A DNA stretch of 64,000 bases from Utricularia gibba (taxonomy: Eukaryota > Plantae > Magnoliophyta). A program made the position numbers and the translations under genes. The notes under the pieces are model-generated. The model saw only the letters and a list, made by a program, of their open reading frames with translations. It searched no databases and was not told the DNA's origin. Below are positions 2,785-48,476 of this stretch, piece by piece (positions within the stretch are counted from its first letter, which is position 1; each line of letters begins with the position of its first letter). The stretch is from the NCBI GenBank assembly GCA_002189035.1, contig NEEC01000013.1:1426001-1490000 (forward strand). The letters are read 5' to 3'.

Positions 2785-3850
2785 ATGGCGATGAATTTTG
2801 TTTTAGCTGTAGTTTTTTTTCAGCTGCTAGCATTAGTCACAGCCCAGGAACACCCTGATGCATCGATCGCCCAGAGATATGAGACATGGATCCGTCGGCA
2901 CGGCCGTGTCTACATAGATGTTGCTGAAAAGGCTGAGAGATTTGAGATCTTCAAGCGTAATGTGAAGTACATTGATTCTGTAAACAGAGCGGGTGATCGG
3001 CCTTACAAGCTTGCCGTTAATGAGTTTGCTGATCTTTCAAGTGATGAGTTTCGGACATCTCGATTAGGATACATAGCCAGGGCACCCAGGAAAGGTTCGA
3101 CTTCCGGCTCCAGAAATGTGACCGTGGCTCGAGTTCCAGGGAGCGTCGATTGGAGACGAAAGGGAGCAGTCACCGGGGTCAAGGATCAGGGCGGTTGCGG
3201 TAAGAAAATTGGTATAGACGTTATTGAGAGAGGAATCATTGTGTTCCGTTTGATGTTCAGGTTGTTGTTGGGCCTTCTCGGCGGTGGCTGCAGTGGAAGG
3301 GATCCATAGGATCAGAACCGGGAAACTCGTTTCACTGTCGGTGCAAGAGCTTGTGGATTGCGACACAGCCGAGAACGACGGCTGTGACGGCGGCGTAATG
3401 GAGAATGCATTCCGATTCATCATCCGCAACCACGGCCTAACAACAGAATCAAACTACCCTTATCGAGGAAGACAGAAAACCTGCATAAAACAGAGAAAAT
3501 CTTCCCTCGTCGCCCACATCTCCGGCTACCAGGATGTTGCAGCAAACAGCGAATCCTCATTGCTCAAAGCCGTGGCAAACCAGCCAGTCTCCGTTGCAAT
3601 TGATGCCGGTAGCCTGGATTTTCAATTCTACTCGAGCGGAGTTTACACCGGTGAGTGTGGAATGGAGTTGAATCACGGTGTTACGGCAGTCGGCTACGGA
3701 GAAACGGGCAACGGGATCAAGTACTGGATCGTAAAGAACTCATGGGGAACTGGTTGGGGAGACGGTGGATACATCAAGATGGCGAGAAACGTTCGTAACC
3801 CTTACGGCCAATGTGGGATAGCTATGCAAGCCTCTTATCCCACTGTATGA
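2785..3850 (+). CDS. P1: papain-like cysteine protease (C1A, SAG12-like), 334 aa. Exons 2785-3199, 3261-3850
   Basis: Signal peptide, ERFNIN-type I29 prodomain, QGGCG|CCWAFS (61-bp GT-AG intron), LNHGV and KNSWG. Catalytic Gln/Cys/His/Asn all present. Confidence 0.95.
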
Positions 3851-18153: not shown

Positions 18154-19212
18154 CTAAGAGATCGGATAGGAAGCGTCGGTGGCGATTCCACACAGTCCGG
18201 TGGGGCTTGACCCAAGAATCTGCATCCGAATGTATCCGCTCTCTCCCCAGCTGGTTCCCCATGAATTCTTCACTATCCAGTAGTTCTCGCCGTTCTCGGA
18301 GCCGTACCCCACAACCGTCACACCGTGATCCAGATTTGTAGTGCAGTCTCCAGTGAAAATCCCACCGGAATATGACTGAAAATCGCTCCCACTCGCATCG
18401 ATAGCCACTGCAATTGGCTGATTCGCCACCGCGGCTTGCAGTGCGTCCTCACCGGCAGCAACATTAGCGAAGTTGGAGATGGTGGCGACGCTGCTGGTGG
18501 AGCTCGCAGCACATGTTCCGTCACTGGCGGTGTATGGGTAGCTATCTTCGGATCCGATCCCCCCATTTGAAATGATCCATTGGAATGCAGATTGTGAAGT
18601 GCCGCCGTTGCAACCGCTGGAATCTGTGTCACAGTCAACCAGCTCTTGCTCTGACAGGGATAACAGGTTACCGGTGTTGATCTCAGTGATGCCCTCCACC
18701 GCAGCTACGGCGGCGAACGCCCAACAGCTCCCTGCATCATTGATAACCCATTATGATCATGTCAATGAATTTAACATGAAACCCTAAATCCTCTCACCGC
18801 ATTGGCCTTGATCCTTCACAGGAGTGACGGCTCCCAAAGTCCTCCAATCAATGCTATCTGGCAGAGCTACATCGCTTACTTTGGAATGGTGGACCGGTGC
18901 AGCCTTATGAAGGCGGGGCTTATACGTGTTCCTTGCAGCAAATTCCTTGTTGGTGAGGTCAGTGTACTTATTCTCTCCAAGCTTGTAAGAGAGGCCTTTT
19001 GCGTTCACAGCATCGATGTGCTCCGCATTGCTCTTGAAGATCTTGAATCTCTCCGCCTTCTCAGCTTCATTTTTGTACACACGGCCGTATTTAGCCATCC
19101 ATTTCTCGTGCCTGGCTTTCATGTGCGCATCGGGATCTACTCTCGCTTCTGCCTGGTAAATTGCGGCCCCGAGCAGCACCAGGAGCGCAATGAAAAGAAC
19201 CTTAGACGCCAT
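18154..19212 (-). CDS. P5: papain-like cysteine protease, 330 aa, very acidic mature domain. Exons 19212-18798, 18731-18154
   Basis: DQGQCG|SCWAFA, LDHGV, KNSWG; 66-bp intron. Confidence 0.95.
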
Positions 19213-22926: not shown

Positions 22927-23984
22927 CTAAGAGATCGGATAGGAAGCGTCGGTGGCGATTCCACACAGTCCGGTGGGGCTTGACCCAAGAATCTGCATCC
23001 GAATGTATCCGCTCTCTCCCCAGCTGGTTCCCATGAATTCTTCACTATCCAGTAGTTCACGCCGTTCTCGGAGCCGTACCCCACAACCGTCACGCCGTGA
23101 TCCAAATTAGTTGTGCAGTCTCCCGTGAAAATCCCACCGGAATATGACTGAAAGGCACTCCCACTCGCGTCGATAGCCACTGCAACGGGCTGAACCGCCA
23201 CCGCGGCTTGCAGTGCATCCTCACCGGTAGCAACATTAGCGAAGTTGGAAATGGTGGCGACATTGCTGTTAGAGCTCGCAGCACATGTTCCGCCAGTAGC
23301 GGTGTACGGGTAACTAGATTCAGACGTGATTCCGCCATTTGAAATGATCCATTGGAATGCAGATTGTGAAGTGCCGCCGTTGCAGCCGTTGGAAGCTGTG
23401 ACACAGTCAACCAGCTCTTGCTCTGACAGGGATATCAGGTTACCGGTGTTGATCTCAGTGATGCCCTCCACCGCGGCTACGGCGGCGAACGCCCAACAGC
23501 TCCCTGCATCATTGATAACGCATTATGATCATGTAAATGGATTTAACATGAAACCCTAAATCCTCTCACCGCATTGGCCTTGATCCTTCACAGGAGTGAC
23601 GGCTCCCAAAGTCCTCCAATCAATGCTATCTGGCAGAGCTACATCGCTTACTTTGGAATGGTGGACCGGTGCAGCCTTATGAAGGCGGGGCTTATACGTG
23701 TTCCTTGCAGCAAATTCCTTGTTGGTGAGGTCAGTGTACTTATTCTCTCCAAGCTTGTAAGAGAGGCCTTTTGCGTTCACAGCATCGATGTGCTCCGCAT
23801 TGCTCTTGAAGATCTTGAATCTCTCCGCCTTCTCAGCTTCATTTTTGTACACTCGGCCGTATTTAACCATCCATTTCTCGTGCCTGGCTTTCATGTGCGC
23901 ATCGGGATCTACTCTCGCTTCTGCCTGGTAAATTGCGGCCCCGAGCAGCACCAGGAGCGCAATGAAAAGAACCTTAGACGCCAT
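22927..23984 (-). pseudogene. P6: duplicate of P5 with a 1-bp deletion just after KNSW (true pseudogene or homopolymer assembly error). Exons 23984-23570, 23503-22927
   Basis: C3 run at 23030-23032 versus C4 in P5. Spliced length to the homologous stop is 992 nt, not a multiple of 3. The shifted frame runs on to 22878. All catalytic residues are retained. Confidence 0.75.
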
Positions 23985-25862: not shown

Positions 25863-25975
25863 TTATACTAATGGAAATGAAGCCCATGTGGCTATTCCAC
25901 ACATTCCAGCCCTCCAATGCTTCTCTGCATCAAGATGTATCCATTTAGTCCCCATCCTGTTTCCCAAGAATTTTC
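25863..25975 (-). pseudogene. 3' remnant A of a P9/P11-type protease gene (last ~37 codons plus 3' flank)
   Basis: Translates as KNSWETGWGLNGYILMQRS...GMCGIATWASFPLV*; its downstream flank matches the P9 and P11 3' flanks. Confidence 0.85.
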
Positions 25976-26638: not shown

Positions 26639-27822
26639 AATCTAATAACCCAAACTTAATTGCAAACGAATGGGATTGAATTTTCAGTGGAAGTACTTCA
26701 AACAGACGCTAATACCACTCCGTGTAGTGTTTGAAATAAGGTCATTAGATATTGGGCATGTACTGTGTTTTGAATATGTGATTCACATTATATTGAATAG
26801 AATTAATTTTGAGATTATATGAATGGAATCAGTTTTAGATTATAGGATTATTTAATAGGACAATATAAAATTATCTTATAAAATTTTATAAAATAAAGTA
26901 TATATTTTCAAAGTAGATAAAAACAAATTATATAATTTTTATAATTAATATTTTCTTTAAAACCAAAAAAAGATTTAATAAATTTAATAATTTCTAAAAT
27001 TAATCAGAATGTAAATTTTTTATTTCATCATAGAACGGTTAAATATTAAATTATTTAAAAATCAAATAGAATAACTTTAATAAATTATGTTTACATAATA
27101 TGCCAATTATTTTATTTGTGAAGTAAAATATGACAATCAAAACCTTAATCAAATCTAATCCTCAAACATGAATCTCAAGCTGAGTTTCATTCTATGGTAA
27201 TCATCTCCCATAGTTTTCGAGCACCGGTTCTTCATAATGTTTTACGAACAAACTATTACAAATTTTTTAGTAATTTTTCGAGTTATTTTTGTTCATTTTG
27301 CTTGATCTTTTTTTTTTCGTGTAGGGGATTGTAATATTTTTCGTAGTGTAGTCTATGCATCGAGAGGTAAATCAGTTAATTATCTTTTGTGTCATGTATC
27401 CCTAAAATTCCTCTTGAAAAGGATAATTGAAAATAAGTTTTAAAAAAAATGTAAAATAAAATTTATTGAAATTCAGAATGCAAAGATTCTCTCCCATCCC
27501 ATGTCACATATTTGGTCGATTTCAAATGCTGTCACTTATTTAGTTATGTTGCGGCACACGACAGCACTATACTGAAGGAGTATTTCCAGCTCATTATCTT
27601 GGAGACTAAGTAGCAGTGTTTGTAAAACAAATTCTTGTTTCTTTTCAATAGCATCTGATGAGTTCACATATTATATCTTTATAGTTATATTCCTGACGGT
27701 AATAAGTAAAACCGTTGCCTTATTGAAATCTGAACGAATTGGGATATTGGGCTGATTCATTGGTCCTTTTTCCTCTCAGTTTTGATCTTTCAAATCCCAA
27801 TCTATCCAATATACATGGCAAT

Positions 27823-28901
27823 CTAATAGATCGGATAGGAAGCATCGGTGGCGATTCCACACAGTCCGGTAGGGCTTGACCCAAGAATCTTCATCCGAAT
27901 GTATCCACTCTCTCCCCAGTCAGTTCCCCATGAATTCTTCACTATCCAATAGTGCAAGCCGTTCTCGGAGCCGTACCCCACAACCGTCATACTGTGGTCC
28001 AAATTTGTTCCGCATCGTCCAGTGAAAATCCCACCAGAATAAAACTGAAAAGCACTCCCACTCGCATCGACGGCCACTGCGACTGGCTGATTCGCCACCG
28101 CGGCTTGCAGTGCATGCTCACCGGTAGCAACATTAGCGAAGTTGGAGATGGTGGCGACGTTGCTCATAGACTTCGCAGAACATGTTCCGTCACTCGCGGT
28201 GCACGGGTACTCATCTTCTGATGCGATGCCTCCATTTGAAACGATCCACTGGAATGCAGATTGTACAGTGCCCCCGCTGCAACCGTTGGAATCTGGAACA
28301 CAGTAACTCAGCTCTGGCGCTGACAGGGATATCAGGTTACCGGTGTTGATCTCAGTGATGCCTTCGACTGCATCTGCGGCGGCGATTGCCCAACTACATT
28401 CTGCATCATTGATAATGCATTATGAACTTCATACTAGACAATATATAATGTCAATGGATTTAACATGAAACCCTTAATCCTCTCACCGCATGGGCCTTCG
28501 TCCTTCACAGGAGTGACGGCTCCCAAAGTCCTCCAATCAACGCTATCTGGCAGAGCTACATCGCTTACTTTGGAATGGTGGACCGGTGCAGCCTTATGAA
28601 GGCGGGGCTTATACGTGTTCCTTGCAGCAAATTCGTTGTTGGTGAGGTCAGTATACTTATTCTCACCAAGCTTGTAAGAGAGGCCTTTTGCGTTCACAGC
28701 ATCGATGTGCTCCGCATTGCTCTTGAAGATCTTGAATCTCTCCGCCTTCTCAGCTTCATTTTTGTACACTCGGCCGTATTTAGCCATCCATTTCTCGTGC
28801 CTGGCTTTCATGTGCGCATCGGGATCTACTCTCGCTTCTGCCTGGTAAATTGTGGCCCCGAGCAGCACCAGGAGCGCGATGAAAAGAACCTTAGACGCCA
28901 T
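27823..28901 (-). CDS. P7: papain-fold protein with catalytic Cys->Ser and oxyanion Gln->Glu (putative pseudoprotease), 330 aa. Exons 28901-28487, 28400-27823
   Basis: Spliced frame read through by hand with no stops: VKDEGPCE|CSWAIAAADAVEG...SLSAPELSYC...NLDHSM...KNSWG...SYPIY*. Canonical GT-AG 86-bp intron. Confidence 0.85.
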
Positions 28902-28962
28902 CGCTCAGTAAGATGGAAGATATCAGGGAGAAGAGGTGCAAATTGAAGTGCAATGCGAGAGG

Positions 28963-28971
28963 TATTTATAG
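28963..28971 (-). promoter_or_regulatory. TATA box of P7
   Basis: CTATAAATA on the - strand about 60 bp upstream of the ATG, at the same position as in P5, P6 and P8. Confidence 0.6.
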
Positions 28972-29967
28972 GGAAAAAATGTCTATTATTCTGAATAAAT
29001 AGTTTATAGACACAAGAAGTCCTTGTCCCGCATCTTTGACATGAATTAAATAGGTCAGTGCCCGTGTGCTTTGTCTTCATAATTAGATTGCCGATTAAGT
29101 AACCATGCAGTTGTTTTTCAATAGCAGATATATTACAAAAGTAATCATTGTATTTTGAATGTGTGATAAAAGTGATCATCGTATATGTAAAAAATTAATC
29201 ATATATAAGAAAAAAAAAGCCCAATATCCACTTTTCTAAATGACCATTTTCAATAGAATTTAGCATAACGGAAAGTAGATCATTCAAATTTAGCCACCCG
29301 TACCATCTCTCTCTCTCAAACACTAACTAATGATAAATTGGTCAAATTTTTAATATACCTTTCGGATTTGGCCCGTCTTATTTTTAAAATACCGGACAAC
29401 TTGAATGTGAAAATAAAAAATGCAACTTGCATGACAGCTTTACCAATAGAGTATCAACCATGGTTAACAAATTTTGACTCGCCGGTTTTACTGACCGAAT
29501 CTACACAATAAATAACTTGTAACTCTGTCACTTTTTTTCTATATTTATTTAATGTAATTTGTGTATGAATTATACTTTCGATTTGAGTACCCAGTAAGAT
29601 TAAGTGTAAAGATTATTAATGAAAAGATAGAAATTTTTTGAAAATTAATAATTATAAATTTAATTATCTGATAAATTCTCCATCTTTATCCCTATTATTT
29701 ACTAGGATTCATGGGAAATATTTGAAAAGATTTTTCACACATTCGATGCTGATAAACATATTAACTATTAAAATTTTAGCTTCATATAAAGTTTGATTTT
29801 TAGGGTGCTGTTTTATGTCATGTAGTCCATGAAATAGGGGTTATATAGAATAATTATTTTTTTTAATATAATATGTGACATATGATCAAATTTTTAATTC
29901 ATGCCATGTTTTGAATTGTTGACCATGGTCAATGGGGTAGTAATTACTAAAGTTCACTATATCGTTC

Positions 29968-31360
29968 TGATAAACGGAAATTTCCTAATATCGTTGCAAT
30001 AAAAATAGAAAATCCGTATCAAATAAATTTATAATCCCTAATCCTCACAAAATACAAATTAAACTGAAAATGCATAGTGGAATTCGGGGTCGATCACAAG
30101 GAGCTTGCGCTTGTCTTGTATTTCAGCAAATGTAGAATTCAAAGTAGGTAAGTCTTAGTTTAAGCTCGAAACAACAGTTGTAAACAAGATCAATAAACGG
30201 TATCAGGTCTAAACGCTAAAGTAACAAGTACTGGTTCTAACTCAGAATAATACTAACGTGCCTTAAAGATCTACAGGTGGTGTGTGCCAAAATTCCTAAT
30301 TTAATCTATCATGTTTCTATACTCACAACTTCAAATAACCTAAGTTTACCCAGGTGATTCATCATATTTTCGGCTAAGTTAATCCTCCATATCATCACCA
30401 ACCTTACAATTAGGTCTACTCGCAACCAAAGCATATAGAACTAGGTCTACCCGGTTCTACTGGTTCTACACCAGACTAACATCTACTGCTCCCGTCTTGA
30501 CCTATTGGTTTACCTCTAAATAAAGCATCTAAGTTGTGAAGGTACTGGTTCCCCTCCTTAGGTCTAACTATGGTTTGATAGATGCAAGAGCTAAGAAACA
30601 AAGGTCAATTTTATTAAGACTCCTAGACCCACATCACCATGCTTCACCTTAAGTCACTCCTAGAGTTTAGCTACTCATGCTTTGAAGGTAAAATGTAATG
30701 GCATTAACATAAAATAACGAAAATGTTGAGGACATAGTGTAAAAGCTAAAAACATAAGCAAACGAAAAGTAAAGTAGTAAAGTTTCTGGATTCCGTTTGC
30801 CATTGTTCACTGGCCGAAACAGTGGTGCTGAACTGAGTCTTTATCTTCTTCCTTCAAGCTGGAGGTTCTTCTCCAGAACAAATTGCCTTTCTTCCTCCTT
30901 CTTTTTGTGTTCTTCGTGTTCGAGTTGAGTTTTTTTGGGGGAGAAACCCCCCCTCGTGTTTGACTTCTCAAAATTCTAGGGTGAACTCCCTTTTTTTGCG
31001 ATTCTCTCTCCTCAGCTTTCTCTTTCCTCCCACTTCCCAAGTCAATTACATTCTCTGACAGATCTGCTGCTCCAGGCCCTGACTTGCAGACTGTCGTCGT
31101 GACAGTGTACTCATTGCCCCCTGCACCTTGGTGACTTGCACGAAATCCAGATTTTTCCTTGATTCTTGGGCTGCTGCTAGACTCCAAAATCGGGTTAGAC
31201 ATGGGGTGGGCTAAATCAAAGGATTTAGCCCACTAATCACACCAAAAATCATATTTTCCCTAATCAAATAAGAATACTTAAAACTATAAAATTAACACTT
31301 AAACATAATTAAAATCTATGATTTTTCTTATCCTAAAACATGAAAATTTGTGTGTTATCA
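29968..31360. mobile_element. Solo LTR, 1393 bp (probably Ty3/gypsy, Athila/Tat-like)
   Basis: TGATAA...TTATCA inverted ends; 5-bp TSD CGTTC/CATTC; empty sites near 25755, 36085 and 42220. Lineage guessed from length and sequence style. Confidence 0.75.
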
Positions 31361-31468
31361 CATTCCATGATTAAAGCATCATGTAGCGCATTAACAACAA
31401 TTATTTTGTAGGTCATGACGTATTTCGCATGGCATGCATACGAAATATGCTAGTGATGAAGTATCATG

Positions 31469-31582
31469 TTGTGCTAATGGATATGAAGCCCATGTGGCTA
31501 TTCCACACATCCCAACGCCTCCAATGCTTCTCTGCATCACGATGTATCCATTTAGTCCCCATCCTGTTTCCCACGAATTTTC
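31469..31582 (-). pseudogene. 3' remnant B of a P9/P11-type protease gene
   Basis: Homologous to remnant A, with the same truncation junction (CCTGAACATATAAAAGGCATAC); frameshifted, stop codon lost. Confidence 0.8.
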
Positions 31583-31793
31583 CTGAACATATAAAAGGCA
31601 TACATTTCGTGGCAGAAATCATCGTTTCGTAGTAACAAGATTTGTGTTTGTTGCACTTTGAGGTGTTACGATGCGCTTTCACTAATCTAATAACTCAAAC
31701 TTAATTGCAAACGAATGGAATTGAATTTCTCAGTGGAAGTACTTCAAATAGACGCTGATACCACTCCCTGTAGTAGTTGACATAAGGCCATTA

Positions 31794-32749
31794 GGATGCG
31801 TTTGATTGCTGGATTTAGGTGGATTGCGACATGGGTTTAAAAATAAACCGACGTTTGGTACGTGTGTTTCAGACGAGTAAAAATAAACCCACCTGCTGCC
31901 GATAAACCCAGCGGGAACTTGCCCAGCTAGGTTTAGCTAAACCCATGGGGGGAGGTCAGTTTAGTTAAACAAGCCTCGTTACTTCCAATTTTATCCTCAC
32001 GTCATCCAATTTTGAACGCAGATCTACCAGAAATCCGATGCATAGGTCTGAAGTAGATTTATTCAGATCTGTAACAGATTTATTCAGATCTGTAACACAT
32101 TTGTTCAGATCTATAACACATTTGTTTAGATCTGTTTGAATTTATTAAAGAAGAAGAAGAAGAAAAGGAAGAAGAAGAAGAAGAAGAAAAGTAAGAAGAA
32201 GAAGAAGAAAAAGAAGAAGATGAAAATAAAGAAGAAAAAGATGAAGACAAAGATAAAGAAAAAAAAATGAAAGTATTAACAACATGTCTAATATTGTGGG
32301 TTTTCATTTTTTATGCTGAATGTGAGTTTTCGTTTTGAAGACGAGCACCGTGTCTATTAATATCCGATGTTTGCAGTAAAATATGAATTTTTGTTTTGAA
32401 AACAAGTACAGTGTCTATTATTACTCAGTGCTTGTTATAAAATAAAGTTTCAATTAAACACTATGATTTATACTATGTGGTGTTCGATTGAACTTATAAA
32501 ATGATATAGAAAAATAAAATATGAGATAATTTATTTTAATTAACTAAAGTCTATATTGGTAATTTTATATAAAAATCATCACAAACCCAATTTTATACCC
32601 GCGTACCAAACGTGTATTAGTCTTAAATCCAAATAATCTAAATTCATTAACCAAGCACGAATTACACCCTTTAAATTCATAAAACTGAGTTATTTAAACC
32701 CAAATAAACTAAACCTTGATTTAGACTAAACCCAACAACCAACTTACCC
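31794..32749. mobile_element. PIF/Harbinger (Tourist-like) non-autonomous element, 956 bp
   Basis: TTA TSD on both sides; imperfect TIRs GGATGCGTTTGATTG / CAACCAACTTACCC; empty site in the P7 unit near 26745-26755. Confidence 0.65.
32148..32250. repeat. Imperfect (GAA)n microsatellite inside the Tourist-like element
   Basis: Directly visible GAA/AAG runs. Confidence 0.9.
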
Positions 32750-33949
32750 TTAGATATTGGGCATGTCCTGTGTTTTGAATATGTGATTCACATTATATTG
32801 AATAGAATTAATTTTAAGATTATATGAATAGAATCAGTTTTAGATTATAAGATTGTTTTATAGGACAATATAAAATTATATTATAAGTTTAATAAAATAG
32901 TTTATATATTTTTAAAGTAGATATGAAGCAAATTATATAATTTTTATAATTAATATTTTCTATAATAACCAAAAAAAGATTTAATAAATTTAATAATTTC
33001 TAAAATTAATCAGAATTTAAAATTTTAATTTCATCATAGAGCGGTTATATATTAAATTATTTAAAAATTAAATAGAATAAATTTAATAAATTATGTTTAC
33101 ATAATCTGCCAATTATTTTATTTGTGAAGTAAAATATGACAATCAAAACCCTAATCAAATCTAATCCTCAAACATGAATCTCAACCCGAGTTTCATTCTA
33201 AGGGAATCATCTCCCATAGTTTTTGAGCACCGATTCTTCATAATGTTTTATGAACAACTTTTTTTAGTAATTTTTTGAGTTACGTTCACTTTGCTAGATC
33301 TTTTTTTTTTTCGTGTAGGGGATTGTAATATTTTTCGTAGTGTAGTCTATGTATCGAGAGGTAAATCAGTTAATTATCTTTTGTGTCATGAATCCCTAAA
33401 TTCCTCCTGAAAAGGATAATTGAAAATAAGTTTTAAAAAAATGTAAAATAAAATTTATTGAAATTCAGAATGTGAAGATTCTCTCCCATGTCAGATATTT
33501 TGTCAATTTCGCAGGCAGTCAGTTATTTAGTTATGATGCGTCACAAGACAGCATTATAATGAAGGATGATTTCTAGCACTATCTTGAAGCCTAAGTAGCA
33601 AGGTTTGTAAAACAAATTTATGTTTCTTTTTAATAGTATCTGATGAGTTCACAAATTACATCTTTATAGTTGTGTTACTAATGATAATAAGTTTAGTCCT
33701 TGTCTTTTTGAAATTTGAACCAATTGGGATGTTAGGCTGATTCTTTGGTTCTTCTTTCTCTCAGTTTTGATCTCTCAAATCCAGACCCATACAGCTTGAC
33801 CCAACTCTTTATCCAGCTATCTATCCAATATGTATTCGTATTTGTCTTCTTCGTGATCTAGCGATTCTGAGGCAGTGTTCCTCTTCATCCCATGGTTTCA
33901 CCAAGTAGAGGTGACCTATCTCTTCATGCTGTAACATATACATGGCAAT

Positions 33950-35025
33950 CTAATAGATCGGATAGGAAGCATCGGTGGCGATTCCACACAGTCCGATAGG
34001 GCTTGACCCAAGAATCTGCATCTGAATGTATCCGTTCTCTCCCCAGCCAGTTCCCCATGAATTCTCCACTATCCAATAGTTCACGCCGTTCTCGGAGACG
34101 TACCCCACAATCGTTACCCAGTGGTTCAAATTTGTTGTGCATGATCCGGTGAAAATCCCACCGGAATATAACTGAAAATCAATCCCACTCGCATCGATAG
34201 CCGCTGCAACTGGCTGATTTGCCACCACGGCTTTTATTGCATCCTCACCGGTAACATTAGCGAAGTTGGAGATGGTGGCGACGTTGCTGGTGGAGCTCGC
34301 AGCACATGTTCCGTCACTGGCGGTGTCTGGGTAGCTATCTTCAGATCCGATGCCCCCATTTGAAATGATCCACTGGAATGCAGATTGTGGAGTGCCGCCG
34401 TTGCAACCGCTGGAATCTGTGTCACAGTCAACCAGCTCTTGCTCTGACAGGGATATCAGGATACCGGTTTTAATCTCAACGATGCCTTCCACTGCAGCTA
34501 CGGCGGCGATTGCCCAGCTACATCCTGCATCATAGATAATGCACAATGAACTTCATACTAGACAAAATATCATCTCAATGGATTTAACATGAAACCCTTA
34601 ATCCTCTCACCGCATTCGCCTTCGTCCTTTACAGGAGTCACGGCTCCCAAAGTCCTCCAATCAATGCTATCTGGCAGAGCTACATCGCTTACTTTGGAAT
34701 GGTGGACCGGTGCAGCCTTATGAAGGCGGGGCTTGTACGTGTTCCTTGCAGCAAATTCCTTGTTGGTGAGATCAGTATACTTATTCTCACCAAGCTTGTA
34801 AGAGAGGCCTTTTGCGTTGACAGCATCGATGTGCTCCGCATTGGTCTTGAAGATCTTGAATCTCTCCGCCTTCTCAGCTTCATTTTTGTACACACGGCCG
34901 TATTTAGCCATCCATTTCTCGTGCCTGGCTTTCATGTGCGCATCGGGATCTACTCTCGCTTCTGCCTGGTGAATTGTGGCCCCGAGCAGCACCAGGAGCG
35001 CCATGAAAAGAACCTTAGACGCCAT
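33950..35025 (-). CDS. P8: papain-fold protein with catalytic Cys->Ser and oxyanion Gln->Glu (putative pseudoprotease), 329 aa. Exons 35025-34611, 34524-33950
   Basis: VKDEGECG|[13 protein letters not shown]...NLNHWV...ENSWG...SYPIY*; 86-bp GT-AG intron; one in-frame 3-bp deletion; frame open. Confidence 0.88.
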
Positions 35026-35086: not shown

Positions 35087-35095
35087 TATTTATAG
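35087..35095 (-). promoter_or_regulatory. TATA box of P8
   Basis: CTATAAATA on the - strand about 60 bp upstream of the ATG. Confidence 0.6.
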
Positions 35096-36192: not shown

Positions 36193-37258
36193 TTATGCTA
36201 ATGGATATGAAGCGCATGTGGCTATTCCACACATTCCAGGACCTAAAGTGCCTCTCTGGATCAAGATGTATCCATATAGTCCCCATCTTGTTCCCCATGA
36301 ATTCTTCACTAACCAAAACGGATTGGATCCGAGAGTCCCGTACCCTACGACGGTAACCCCGTGGTTGATGCTCGTCCCGCACTTTGGTGAATTGAATACT
36401 CCGCTGGTATAGAGTTGAAAATCCAATGAATCGGCTTCGATCGCGACGGAAACGGGCTGATTCGCCACTGCGCATTGCAGCGCGGTCTCGTTGTTTTGGG
36501 GAACACACTGGTAGCCCACAAGGGTGGCCGCAACCGGTCTCATGCTACTGGAGATGCATGTTGCTTGAGTCCCTTTGTAGGGGTAGGTTGCTTCGGATGC
36601 GACGCCGTTTTTCATTATGAAGGAAAAGCCAGCATTCATTGTCCCACCGTTGCACCCATAGCGATACGGATTGCAGCTTACAAGCTCTTGCTCAGATAAA
36701 GAAATTAGGGTACGGGTTTTGATCTGGCGGATGCCTTCTGTGGCTGCGATGGCGGAGAAAGCCCAGCAACTACCTGCATCACAGACTTATCTTTTATATC
36801 CATAAACAACACCCGTGAAGACTTCGTTTTTTCTTACCACACTGGCCTTGATCCTTGACGGGAGTGACGGCACCCAACGCCGTCCAGTTGATGCTCGAGG
36901 GAAGCGCTTGTTGGTTAACGTTCGCGTAACGGAAAGGGGTGGCAGTATGCTGCTCCGGTCGTACGAACCTGTTCCTGGATTCACGAAACTCCTCGTTGGT
37001 GAGATCAGCGAAGGCGTTCTCGCCGAGCTTGTAGGAAAGGCCGGCGGCATTAACAGAATCGATGTACTCCGCGTTGCTCTTGAAGATTTGATATCTCTTA
37101 GTCTTCTCCGCTTCGTCCTTGTATACACGGCCGTGTCGCTGCATCCAGCTATCGTGCCTCGCCATCATCTCCGCTTCTGGGGTTGATCTCGACTCCGCCT
37201 CGCAAGCCAAAGCTCCCAGTACAGCGACCAACGCAAGGAAAACAAACTTAGATCCCAT
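36193..37258 (-). CDS. P9: papain-like cysteine protease, 333 aa. Exons 37258-36838, 36773-36193
   Basis: Start at MGSKFVF (signal peptide); DQGQCG|SCWAFS, INHGV, KNSWG; 64-bp intron. Confidence 0.93.
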
Positions 37259-47395: not shown

Positions 47396-48476
47396 TTATG
47401 CTACTGGATATGAAGCCCATGTGGCTATTCCACACATTCCAGGACCTCCAGCGCCTCTCTGGATCAAGATGTATCCATTTAGTCCCCACCATGTTCCCCA
47501 CGAATTCTTCACTAGCCAATACTGTTTGGATCCGAGAGTCCCGTATCCTACGACGGTAACCCCGTGGTCGACGTTTGTCCCGCAATTTGGTGAACTGAAT
47601 ACTCCGCTGGAGTAGAATTGAAAATCCGATGAATCGGCTTCGATCGCGACGGAAACGGGCTGATGCGCCACCGCGCATTGCAGCGCGGTCTCGTTGTTTT
47701 GGGGAACATACTGGTAGCCCACGAGGGTGGCCGCAACCGGTGTCATTCTACTGGGGATGCATGACGCTAGATTCACATTGTAGGGGTAGGTTGCTTCGGA
47801 TACGACGCCGTTTTGCATTATGAAGTAAAAACCATCATCCATTGACCCACCGTTGCATCCTTCGCCATCCTGATTGCAGCTTACAAGCTCTTGCTCAGAT
47901 AACGAAATTAGGGCACCGGTTCTGATCTTGTGGATGCCTTCTGTGGCTGCGATGGCGGAGAAAGCCCAGCAACTACCTGCATTACAGACTTATCTTTTAT
48001 ATCCATAAACAGCACCTTTACTAGCAACACGCGTGAAGACTTCATTTTTTCTTACCACACTGGCCTTGATCCTTGACGGGAGTGACGGCACCCAACGCCG
48101 TCCAGTTGATGCTCGAGGGAATCGCTTGTTGGTTGACGTTCGCGTAACGGAAAGGGGTGGCAGTATGCTGCTCCGGTCGTACGAACCTGTTCCTGGATGC
48201 ACGAAACTCCTCGTTGGTGAGATCAGCAAAGGCGTTCTCGCCGAGCTTGTAGGAAAGGCCGGCGGCATTAACAGAATCGATGTACTCCGCGTTGCTCTTG
48301 AAGATTTGGTATCTCTTAGTCTTCTCCGCTTCGTCCTTGTATACACGGCCGTGTCGCTGCATCCAGCTCTCGTGCCTCGCCATCATCTCCGCTTCTGGGG
48401 TTGATCTCGACTCCGCCTCGTAAGTGAAAGCTCCCAGCAAAACGATCAACGCAACAAAAACAAACTTAGATCCCAT
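47396..48476 (-). CDS. P11: papain-like cysteine protease, 333 aa, sister of P9. Exons 48476-48056, 47976-47396
   Basis: DQGQCG|SCWAFS, VDHGV, KNSWG; 79-bp intron. The copia is inserted about 85 bp beyond the stop codon. Confidence 0.93.

Follow-up and report, generated by a model that had tools for sequence, protein, structure and literature searches.

The stretch of Utricularia gibba DNA analysed here (64,000 nucleotides of contig NEEC01000013.1, positions 1,426,001 to 1,490,000; hereafter the window, whose own positions serve as coordinates) contains 13 two-exon genes for papain-like cysteine proteases (PLCPs, family C1A), which were identified by tblastn and spliced gene models. In all 13 paralogs a phase-1 intron lies inside the active-site motif, between the Cys22-G and S-C-W codons (residues are numbered as in papain throughout). 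Eleven paralogs read KDQG.CGSCW or KSQG.CGSCW across this motif and g1 reads GCCW. The genes P7 (27823-28901) and P8 (33950-35025), both on the minus strand and with products of 330 and 329 amino acids, respectively, have serine in place of the catalytic cysteine and are the subject of this work.

Exon 1 of P7 (28901-28487) encodes a signal peptide, the I29 prodomain and the start of the mature domain, and ends in KDEGPC plus the G of a split codon. It is followed by an 86-nt phase-1 intron with GT..AG borders (28401-28486) and by exon 2 (28400-27823 including the stop codon), which encodes the catalytic domain and in which the split codon G|AA yields Glu23. A TATA box (TATAAATA) was read directly at 28963-28970, approximately 62-69 nt 5′ of the ATG, and a 3′ untranslated region spans 27723-27822, the poly(A) addition site being placed near 27723 by an RNA contig. 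P8 has the same layout, with a directly read TATA box at 35087-35094, exon 1 at 35025-34611 (ending in KDEGEC plus G), an 86-nt GT..AG intron at 34525-34610 and exon 2 at 34524-33950 including the stop codon. The introns of both genes and exon 2 of P8 were established by direct reading together with the spliced models. The signal peptide of P7 and P8 was read from the hydrophobic N-terminus MASKVLF..AEA; the layout includes neither a granulin domain nor a KDEL tail, and the C-terminus is ...SYPIY.

The spliced models give KDEGPC-E-CSW for P7 and KDEGEC-G-CSW for P8. Relative to the canonical motif, both genes have Gln19 changed to Glu (GAA, at 28499-28497 in P7 and 34623-34621 in P8), Ser24 changed to Cys (TGT) and Phe28 changed to Ile, and in both Cys25 is changed to Ser, encoded by AGT in P7 and by AGC in P8 (TGT AGT at 28398-28393 and TGT AGC at 34522-34517 for residues 24 and 25). 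His159 and Asn175 are present and align with the invariant His and Asn (NLDH and KNSW in P7, NLNH and ENSW in P8), the His of P8 being followed by Trp (NHW). The six disulfide cysteines, Trp177, Trp181 and the GCxGG loop (Gly65-Gly66) are also retained. An alternative 3′ splice site, the AG within TGTAG, would delete codon 24 and the first base of codon 25; it was considered and rejected, since the frame would move by 7 nt. The preliminary description of this locus had placed a Cys25-to-Ser and a Gln19-to-Glu replacement on either side of the intron, with His and Asn kept, in two genes with a signal peptide, splice sites, a TATA box and an open frame; codon-by-codon reading of P7 and P8 bore out each of these points and added the change at Phe28, and the approximately 45 exon 2 differences counted there by hand became 46 residues plus one 1-residue gap on recount (exon 1 differs at 6 residues).

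Pfam comparison of P7 showed PF00112 (Peptidase_C1, 2.5e-67) over residues 117-329 and PF08246 (Inhibitor_I29, 2.9e-16). The AF2 structure model, which covers exon 2 of P7, showed a confident papain fold for this domain, with a mean predicted local distance difference test score (pLDDT) of 89 and a predicted template-modelling score of 0.89. Its best Protein Data Bank (PDB) match was dionain-1 (5a24; template-modelling (TM) score 0.95, 52% identity), and its structural matches included the nucleophile-less plant protein 2b1m (TM score 0.90, 44% identity) and 7q8g, a C25S form of cathepsin V with an uncleaved peptide. In a reference set of 94 canonical plant enzymes, Cys25 is present in all sequences (by selection) and Gln19 in 94 of 94. 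P7 and P8 thus lack two of the features of an active C1A cysteine peptidase, Cys25 and Gln19, and have the other two, His159 and Asn175. By the MEROPS-style definition, as quoted in PMC13520124, a non-peptidase homologue is a protein with family homology and at least one catalytic residue replaced, and P7 and P8 fall within it.

The closest paralog with canonical catalytic residues is P5 (g5; 18154-19212, minus strand), and P6 (g6; 22933-23984, minus strand) has the canonical motif as well; both read KDQGQCG|SCW, with codons AGC TGT. The P7 promoter (-240 to -1), although 91-95% identical to those of P5 and P6, is shorter by a 23-bp deletion. In P6, one base is missing from a G run (TGGGGA to TGGGA) near 23031, right after the Asn175-Ser-Trp codons, so that the frame shifts and the last ~33 residues would be lost; P6 is either a real young pseudogene or the site of a long-read homopolymer error. 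The two genes had been described as active sisters of P7 and P8, and this is correct for the catalytic residues of both, but not for the reading frame of P6 as assembled.

A possible homopolymer error in P6 bears on the question of whether the CSW and DEG codons of P7 and P8 are themselves sequencing or assembly errors. Positions 33706-34669 of the window were tiled by contigs of a 2013 DNA run (X11) without a single difference, the Cys24-Ser25 and Glu19 codons of P8 included (contigs at 34586-34669, in exon 1, and at 33706-34615, each with 0 differences), and a 2019 DNA run showed three single-base variants elsewhere in P8. Independent read support for the active-site codons applies to P8, whereas the P7 codons lie outside the read sets compared, which leaves the error explanation some room at P7. 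The changes, however, are substitutions at four codons in two loci, with different Ser codons (AGT and AGC), and not homopolymer indels; since the substitutions are common to two loci that spell Ser25 differently, and since P8 is matched base for base by separate short-read data, an error is very unlikely, and of the explanations considered here it is the one to which we give the least weight.

RNA contigs were found for both genes at their 3′ ends. A P7 contig of 452 nt from read set X1 covers 27723-28155 and ends, approximately 100 nt past the stop codon, in a 19-nt T run corresponding to a poly(A) tail; the same allele was found in X2, and X3 yielded an exact contig of 200 nt. The P7 RNA contig differs from the window at 6 positions within 27907-28081 (four synonymous differences, R267P and G261S). 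The P8 contig, from X6, extends over 33935-34282; its 246 nt at 34037-34282, which carry P8-specific states, match exactly, while 10 clustered differences at 33965-34036, within the final 25 codons, correspond to none of the paralogs in the window. These differences suggest that the RNAs of P7 and P8 may derive in part from other alleles or from almost identical copies located elsewhere, such as in a sister array. No RNA was seen over the 3-kb spacer. The depth of the P7 contig in X1 equals that of the exon 1 contig of P5/P6 type.

In the protein tree, P5 to P8 form a clade with support of 100/100, within which P7 and P8 are sisters (91/95) on terminal branches 4-5 times as long as those of P5 and P6. 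P7 and P8 share the derived states Q19E, S24C, C25S and F28I, and their flanks are approximately 93% identical. Counts of sites at which P5 and P6 share one state and P7 and P8 another (56|78) were 35 in the promoter, 5 in exon 1, 2 in the intron and 27 in the downstream flank; in exon 2 there were 8 in the first 44 nt and 9 in the last 223 nt. Because the four replacements are shared and P7 and P8 are sisters, a single inactivation that preceded the duplication, as had been proposed, is well supported by these sequence comparisons, to which the dominance of the 56|78 pattern adds. Codons 24-25 are AGY TGY (Ser-Cys) in 11 of 13 paralogs, so that SCW is the most parsimonious ancestral motif and two first-position changes would be needed to reach TGT AGT. 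The earlier suggestion that the Ser codon arose by one T-to-A change from a CCW ancestor therefore stands only in part: CCW is a possible intermediate, perhaps an active one, but the ancestor was most parsimoniously SCW and a single change is not enough.

The ancestral dead gene would have been copied as part of a unit of approximately 5-6 kb. In the P8-P7 spacer, at 31472-31582 (minus strand), tblastn with g11 detected a relic of the 3′ end of a protease gene like g9 and g11 (76% identity over residues 297-333 of g11), and a twin relic of the last exon of such a gene lies at 25869-25975 (minus strand). Both relics comprise approximately 37 residues, are 73-85% identical to g11 and lie upstream of P6 and P7 as the intact g9 (36193-37258, minus strand) lies upstream of P8. 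Because the placement of the relics mirrors that of g9 and P8, the repeated unit began inside g9. Both g9 and g11 (47396-48476, minus strand) keep Cys25 and Gln19. The P8-P7 spacer also contains a dispersed repeat (31141-31281), with an open reading frame (ORF) at 30807-31202 on the minus strand, where DNA word depth reaches hundreds to thousands (3349 in X14); this repeat probably accounts for the spacer being ~1.2 kb longer than its neighbours.

Exon 2 of P8 contains a tract of ~310 bp (34173-34480, minus strand; alignment columns 545-855) that groups with P5 and not with P7. Within the tract, 6 sites show the pattern 58|67 and 1 site shows 56|78, versus 0 and 17 (8 + 9), respectively, in the rest of exon 2, and P5 and P8 are 96% identical in the tract core (columns 560-760). 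The matching part of P5 is at ~18360-18670, and the tract stops ~40 nt short of the active-site codons. These site patterns mark it as a product of gene conversion or recombination between a dead and a live paralog. Synonymous divergence between the P5/P6 and P7/P8 pairs was 0.05-0.11 in exon 1 and 0.19-0.29 in exon 2. As the value for exon 1 is far below that for exon 2, the comparison indicates that the 5′ half has been homogenised by gene conversion, and that the apparently frozen prodomain is partly due to this, besides constraint on the protein. The near-invariance of the prodomain that had been pointed out thus does not reflect constraint on the protein alone. Synonymous divergence is very high over the opening 14 codons of exon 2, and an older segment was considered as its cause; this idea was rejected because the synonymous states of P7 and P8 there match those of other paralogs, and the signal is small-sample noise.

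We consider P7 and P8 with moderate confidence, at about even chances, to be catalytically dead, secreted pseudopeptidases whose ORFs have been maintained. The main competing explanation is that they are young functionless duplicates that were inactivated once and copied by unequal crossing-over, are decaying neutrally and have not yet been hit by a stop codon or a frameshift, their 5′ halves being kept alike by conversion from functional neighbours; this is possible, but we regard it as less probable. One argument between the two comes from the ORFs. The noncoding flanks of P7 and P8 show 7.3% divergence with 24 indel events per 160 substitutions, and 22 of these indels are not multiples of three. 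Scaled to two coding sequences of 990 nt, this rate predicts ~10 frameshifts, whereas none was observed, and P7 and P8 are separated by a single coding indel, the in-frame loss of 3 nt from P8. Under a Poisson model, zero frameshifts have a probability of 5e-5, rising to 0.08 on the assumption that indels are four times rarer in coding DNA, and in a neutral substitution simulation both ORFs remained stop-free in ~8% of trials. Decay is also opposed by the preservation of the six disulfide cysteines, His, Asn and Trp177/Trp181 through 46 replacements, and by the existence of a polyadenylated transcript.

The ratio of nonsynonymous to synonymous divergence (dN/dS, omega) was estimated pairwise by NG86 and with our own GY94-F3x4 branch model on the four genes P5 to P8. 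Within exon 1, the prodomain has a dN of 0.022 (7 changes in 320 sites) versus a flank divergence of 0.073 (p = 2e-4), far below the neutral rate, while its dS of 0.070 equals flank divergence; the equality speaks against a recent exon 1 conversion between P7 and P8. Foreground omega for exon 1 was 0.32, and omega = 1 was marginally rejected (p = 0.056). The mature domain behaves differently. Pairwise omega for exon 2 was 0.97 for P7-P8, 0.24 for P5-P6, 0.21 for g3-g4 and 0.15 for g10-g12, and the branch model gave 1.32 on the terminal branches of P7 and P8 versus a background of 0.29 (likelihood-ratio test, p = 1.1e-4), or 1.64 versus 0.19 when the P5-like tract was left out (p = 3.8e-4). In the 77 codons at the 3′ end, outside the tract, dS was 0.071 and dN 0.130, giving an omega of 1.83, and this dN exceeds flank divergence (0.073; p = 0.03-0.04). 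The branch leading to the ancestor of P7 and P8 had an omega of ~0.25-0.29, with replacements concentrated at residues 19, 24, 25 and 28. Rapid change of the mature domain is common to several pairs of the array and not confined to P7 and P8: g9-g11 has a dN/dS of 1.12 in exon 2 (44 nonsynonymous versus 12 synonymous differences) and 0.55 in exon 1.

Several results weigh against maintenance by selection and, in part, directly favour decay. The mature-domain omega of 1.3-1.6 is not distinguishable from 1 (p = 0.28-0.33), as neutral decay predicts. Across 81 columns with a conservation of 85% or more in the 94 canonical enzymes, P7 and P8 deviate at 12 each, P5 and P6 at 3-4, and g3 and g4 at 8-9. 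Fully invariant positions are among those replaced, namely Gly23 (in P7) and the second tyrosine of YPY, which has become Cys in P7 and Asp in P8; so are highly conserved ones, namely E50, Q51 and D55 (in P7) and the Gly of GYG (in P8). The indel reference consists of AT-rich flanks, which are probably more indel-prone than coding DNA, and gene conversion from intact paralogs, demonstrably active in the array and seen in P8, can repair copies without selection. Gene death may already have occurred next door, given that P6, with its canonical residues, may be frameshifted. The P7- and P8-specific RNA contigs are shallow, with a word depth of 13-80 and low specific depth in most libraries, while words shared with P5 and P6 reach a depth of thousands in two libraries; the contigs represent 3′ ends, none spanning the intron or the mutated codons, and both genes are documented at the DNA and RNA level only. 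Neither a word-indexed protein search with exon 2 of P7 nor an exhaustive search of 1.84 billion representatives returned an ortholog or any match above 59% identity; these collections also lack the proteins of this genome.

Retained non-catalytic proteins are nevertheless somewhat favoured over pure decay, because the frames are open despite the indel load of the flanks, the prodomain and signal peptide are constrained, the disulfides and the cleft rim are kept, and the transcripts are polyadenylated. A stronger version of the retention reading, in which P7 and P8 would be selected, secreted binding proteins of the digestive system of the trap with a remodelled, acidified active site and a cleft under diversifying selection, acting either as a sponge for protease inhibitors of prey or of trap microbes or in a new non-peptidase reaction, appears unlikely on the sequence data but is allowed by them, because dN lies above flank divergence in part of exon 2, seven sites are recurrently replaced, the ORFs are maintained and the prodomain is constrained. 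The acidified former active site comprises Glu19 together with Glu23 (P7) or Glu21 (P8), Cys24, Ser25 and His159.

The same features raise the question of whether P7 and P8 are enzymes with altered chemistry, in which a Ser25-His159-Asn175 triad and Glu19, with Glu23 in P7 or Glu21 in P8, would act on non-peptide or activated-ester substrates, as has been proposed for the silicateins of sponges. His and Asn are retained, and each copy independently gained a second Glu beside Glu19 (Gly23Glu in P7, Gln21Glu in P8). Seven sites have changed in both copies, to a different residue in each, versus 3.3 expected (p = 0.026), and some of these sites presumably line the cleft, by our reading of the papain subsites; the excess of dN over flank divergence in the 3′ part of exon 2 points in the same direction. 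Papain itself gains nitrile-hydratase activity upon Gln19Glu substitution. Studies in this direction are cited by PMC3643963 (as ref. 7). On the other hand, C25S mutants of the papain family are essentially inactive and serve as dead controls, many positions of the cleft differ between P7 and P8, unlike what one conserved new active site would lead one to expect, and Gly23Glu in P7 places a large side chain at the site of the substrate backbone. The residues of the silicatein triad (Ser25-His-Asn) are present in P7 and P8, but a phylogenetic link to silicateins is absent. Altered chemistry is thus improbable.

Another conceivable explanation is that P7 and P8 are still cysteine proteases, with Cys24 acting as the nucleophile one position upstream. 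The change is an exact swap of Ser-Cys to Cys-Ser that preserves the number of free cysteines in P8, and active CCW enzymes with Cys24 exist (g1 and SAG12-type matches); in CCW enzymes, however, the nucleophile stays at residue 25, and we know of no precedent for a nucleophile at residue 24. The oxyanion-hole residue Gln19 and Phe28 were lost together with the swap, and the way in which the domain evolves, relaxed or accelerated, is in keeping with a loss of catalysis. We rate this explanation as slightly less probable again than altered chemistry. With both the thiol nucleophile and the oxyanion-hole Gln lost, ordinary cysteine-protease activity of P7 and P8 is predicted to be very unlikely; C25S/A mutants of the papain family are standard dead forms for crystallography (PMC13520124).

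Papain-fold proteins with Ser25 and with His and Asn kept are known from other kingdoms, namely the silicateins, the rodent testins, the SERA5/6-type proteins of Plasmodium and the SMIPP-C proteins of scabies mites, for which non-proteolytic or altered-chemistry roles have been proposed, including inhibitor or complement binding. Their origins are independent of that of P7 and P8, and we know of none that combines C25S, Q19E and the S24C swap. Among plants, soybean P34 and Pachyrhizus SPE31 (the protein of PDB entry 2b1m) likewise have the papain fold but no nucleophile, and are non-enzymes that are stable and abundant; they differ from P7 and P8 in having Gly at position 25 and in belonging to an old, conserved legume lineage of vacuolar or seed proteins, and are not recent tandem paralogs of active enzymes. 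Dionain-1, a digestive enzyme of the Venus flytrap, and secreted SAG12/SAG39-type plant PLCPs have the same pre-pro-mature layout as P7, without granulin or KDEL, but are active enzymes with Cys25 and Gln19.

A survey of the retrieved homologs for versions without Cys25 yielded full-length plant Ser25 homologs with His and Asn kept, as in P7 and P8, from Protea cynaroides (KAJ4952040.1, DEGQCGSSW), Curcuma longa (XP_074557118.1, CESSW) and Gypsophila vaccaria (KAL9232159.1, CGSSW), the Protea protein carrying Q19E along with C25S; other homologs surveyed had Gly, Asp or Val at position 25. Unlike P7 and P8, these three proteins are singletons on long branches, unrelated to P7 and P8 in the tree, and keep Ser24 (SSW and not CSW). 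Exact-product look-ups of the exon 1 ORFs of P7 and P8 gave no match, and a scan of metagenome contigs aimed at Utricularia trap metagenomes and metatranscriptomes gave only relatives of at most 56% identity. A closer parallel was described by Mahelka et al. 2026 (PMC13520124, August 2026), who reported on a C1A gene of wild Hordeum that has multiplied into many copies, most of which have Cys changed to Ser at the nucleophile (CGSS) with His and Asn kept. The Hordeum pseudopeptidase copies are transcribed, occur beside active ones, show episodic positive selection and have confident AlphaFold folds, and the authors propose decoy or binding roles for them (PMC13520124). P7 and P8 likewise are transcribed C25S copies beside canonical ones. 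The Hordeum set, in contrast, belongs to another subfamily, derives from a horizontally transferred Panicoideae gene and has the CGSS motif without a Ser/Cys swap, whereas P7 and P8 are 2 of 13 copies, go back to one event, have Q19E and F28I in addition and lie in an array of a carnivorous plant. Because of the database homologs and the Hordeum pseudopeptidases, the class is already known, and the novelty of such a plant class, raised in the preliminary description, is not supported; the Protea protein combines C25S and Q19E. Particular to P7 and P8 are the exchange of Ser and Cys, the one-step loss of Gln19 along with Phe28, the single event with two survivors and the probable digestive nature of the array.

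Regarding the array as a whole, g1 (2785-3850, plus strand), its sole CCW-type gene, alone clusters with SAG12-type proteins from other plants (Perilla SAG12; support 93/95 in the protein tree), and g1 is probably the conserved founder, the other 12 genes being a lineage-specific expansion. The best named matches are SAG12, SAG39 and vignain, at 53-58% identity, and the best full-length matches are Lamiales SAG12 proteins. For P5 to P8, membership of the SAG12 group is suggested by the best named matches, at 53-58%, but their clade joins the tree at an unresolved node. A recent preprint reports trap-expressed tandem arrays of cysteine proteases in Utricularia gibba (10.1101/2025.04.05.646448). 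Some of the array proteins in that study lack one InterPro active-site signature, although which signature and why are not stated there.

The course of events that we favour, in which P7 and P8 are maintained pseudopeptidases, is as follows. One ancestral gene in a tandem array of probably secreted, SAG12-type proteases lost Cys25, Gln19 and Phe28, with Ser24 changed to Cys beside the nucleophile, and its two copies have remained transcribed, spliceable and open while their mature domains changed amino acids 4-5 times faster than those of the sisters. The products would probably be secreted as pro-forms and processed by the active sisters or by other proteases; since P7 and P8 would be unable to activate themselves, the pro-forms would persist unless processed in trans. 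Their role may lie in binding, whether they sequester cystatin-like inhibitors or retain peptides or partners within the cleft. An inhibitor sponge, or decoy, is compatible with the data, and the sequence feature that bears on such a candidate role is the preserved cleft rim (Gly65-Gly66, Trp177 and Trp181). A guarded decoy of the Rcr3 type, or an inhibitor sponge, would bind cystatin-like inhibitors of pathogens or prey; Rcr3 is, in addition, monitored by a receptor.

Catalytically dead homologs of proteases are common, but few have a known job. P7 and P8 constitute a clean natural experiment, with one datable inactivation, two survivors and active sisters with a near-identical prodomain a few kilobases away. 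Should the P7 and P8 proteins be produced and bind inhibitors or substrates, they would reveal how a battery of digestive or defensive proteases protects or regulates itself. If they are simply decaying, they would give a measure of the time for which a dead copy can pass for an intact gene under active gene conversion, which matters for counts of digestive enzyme genes in the genomes of carnivorous plants.

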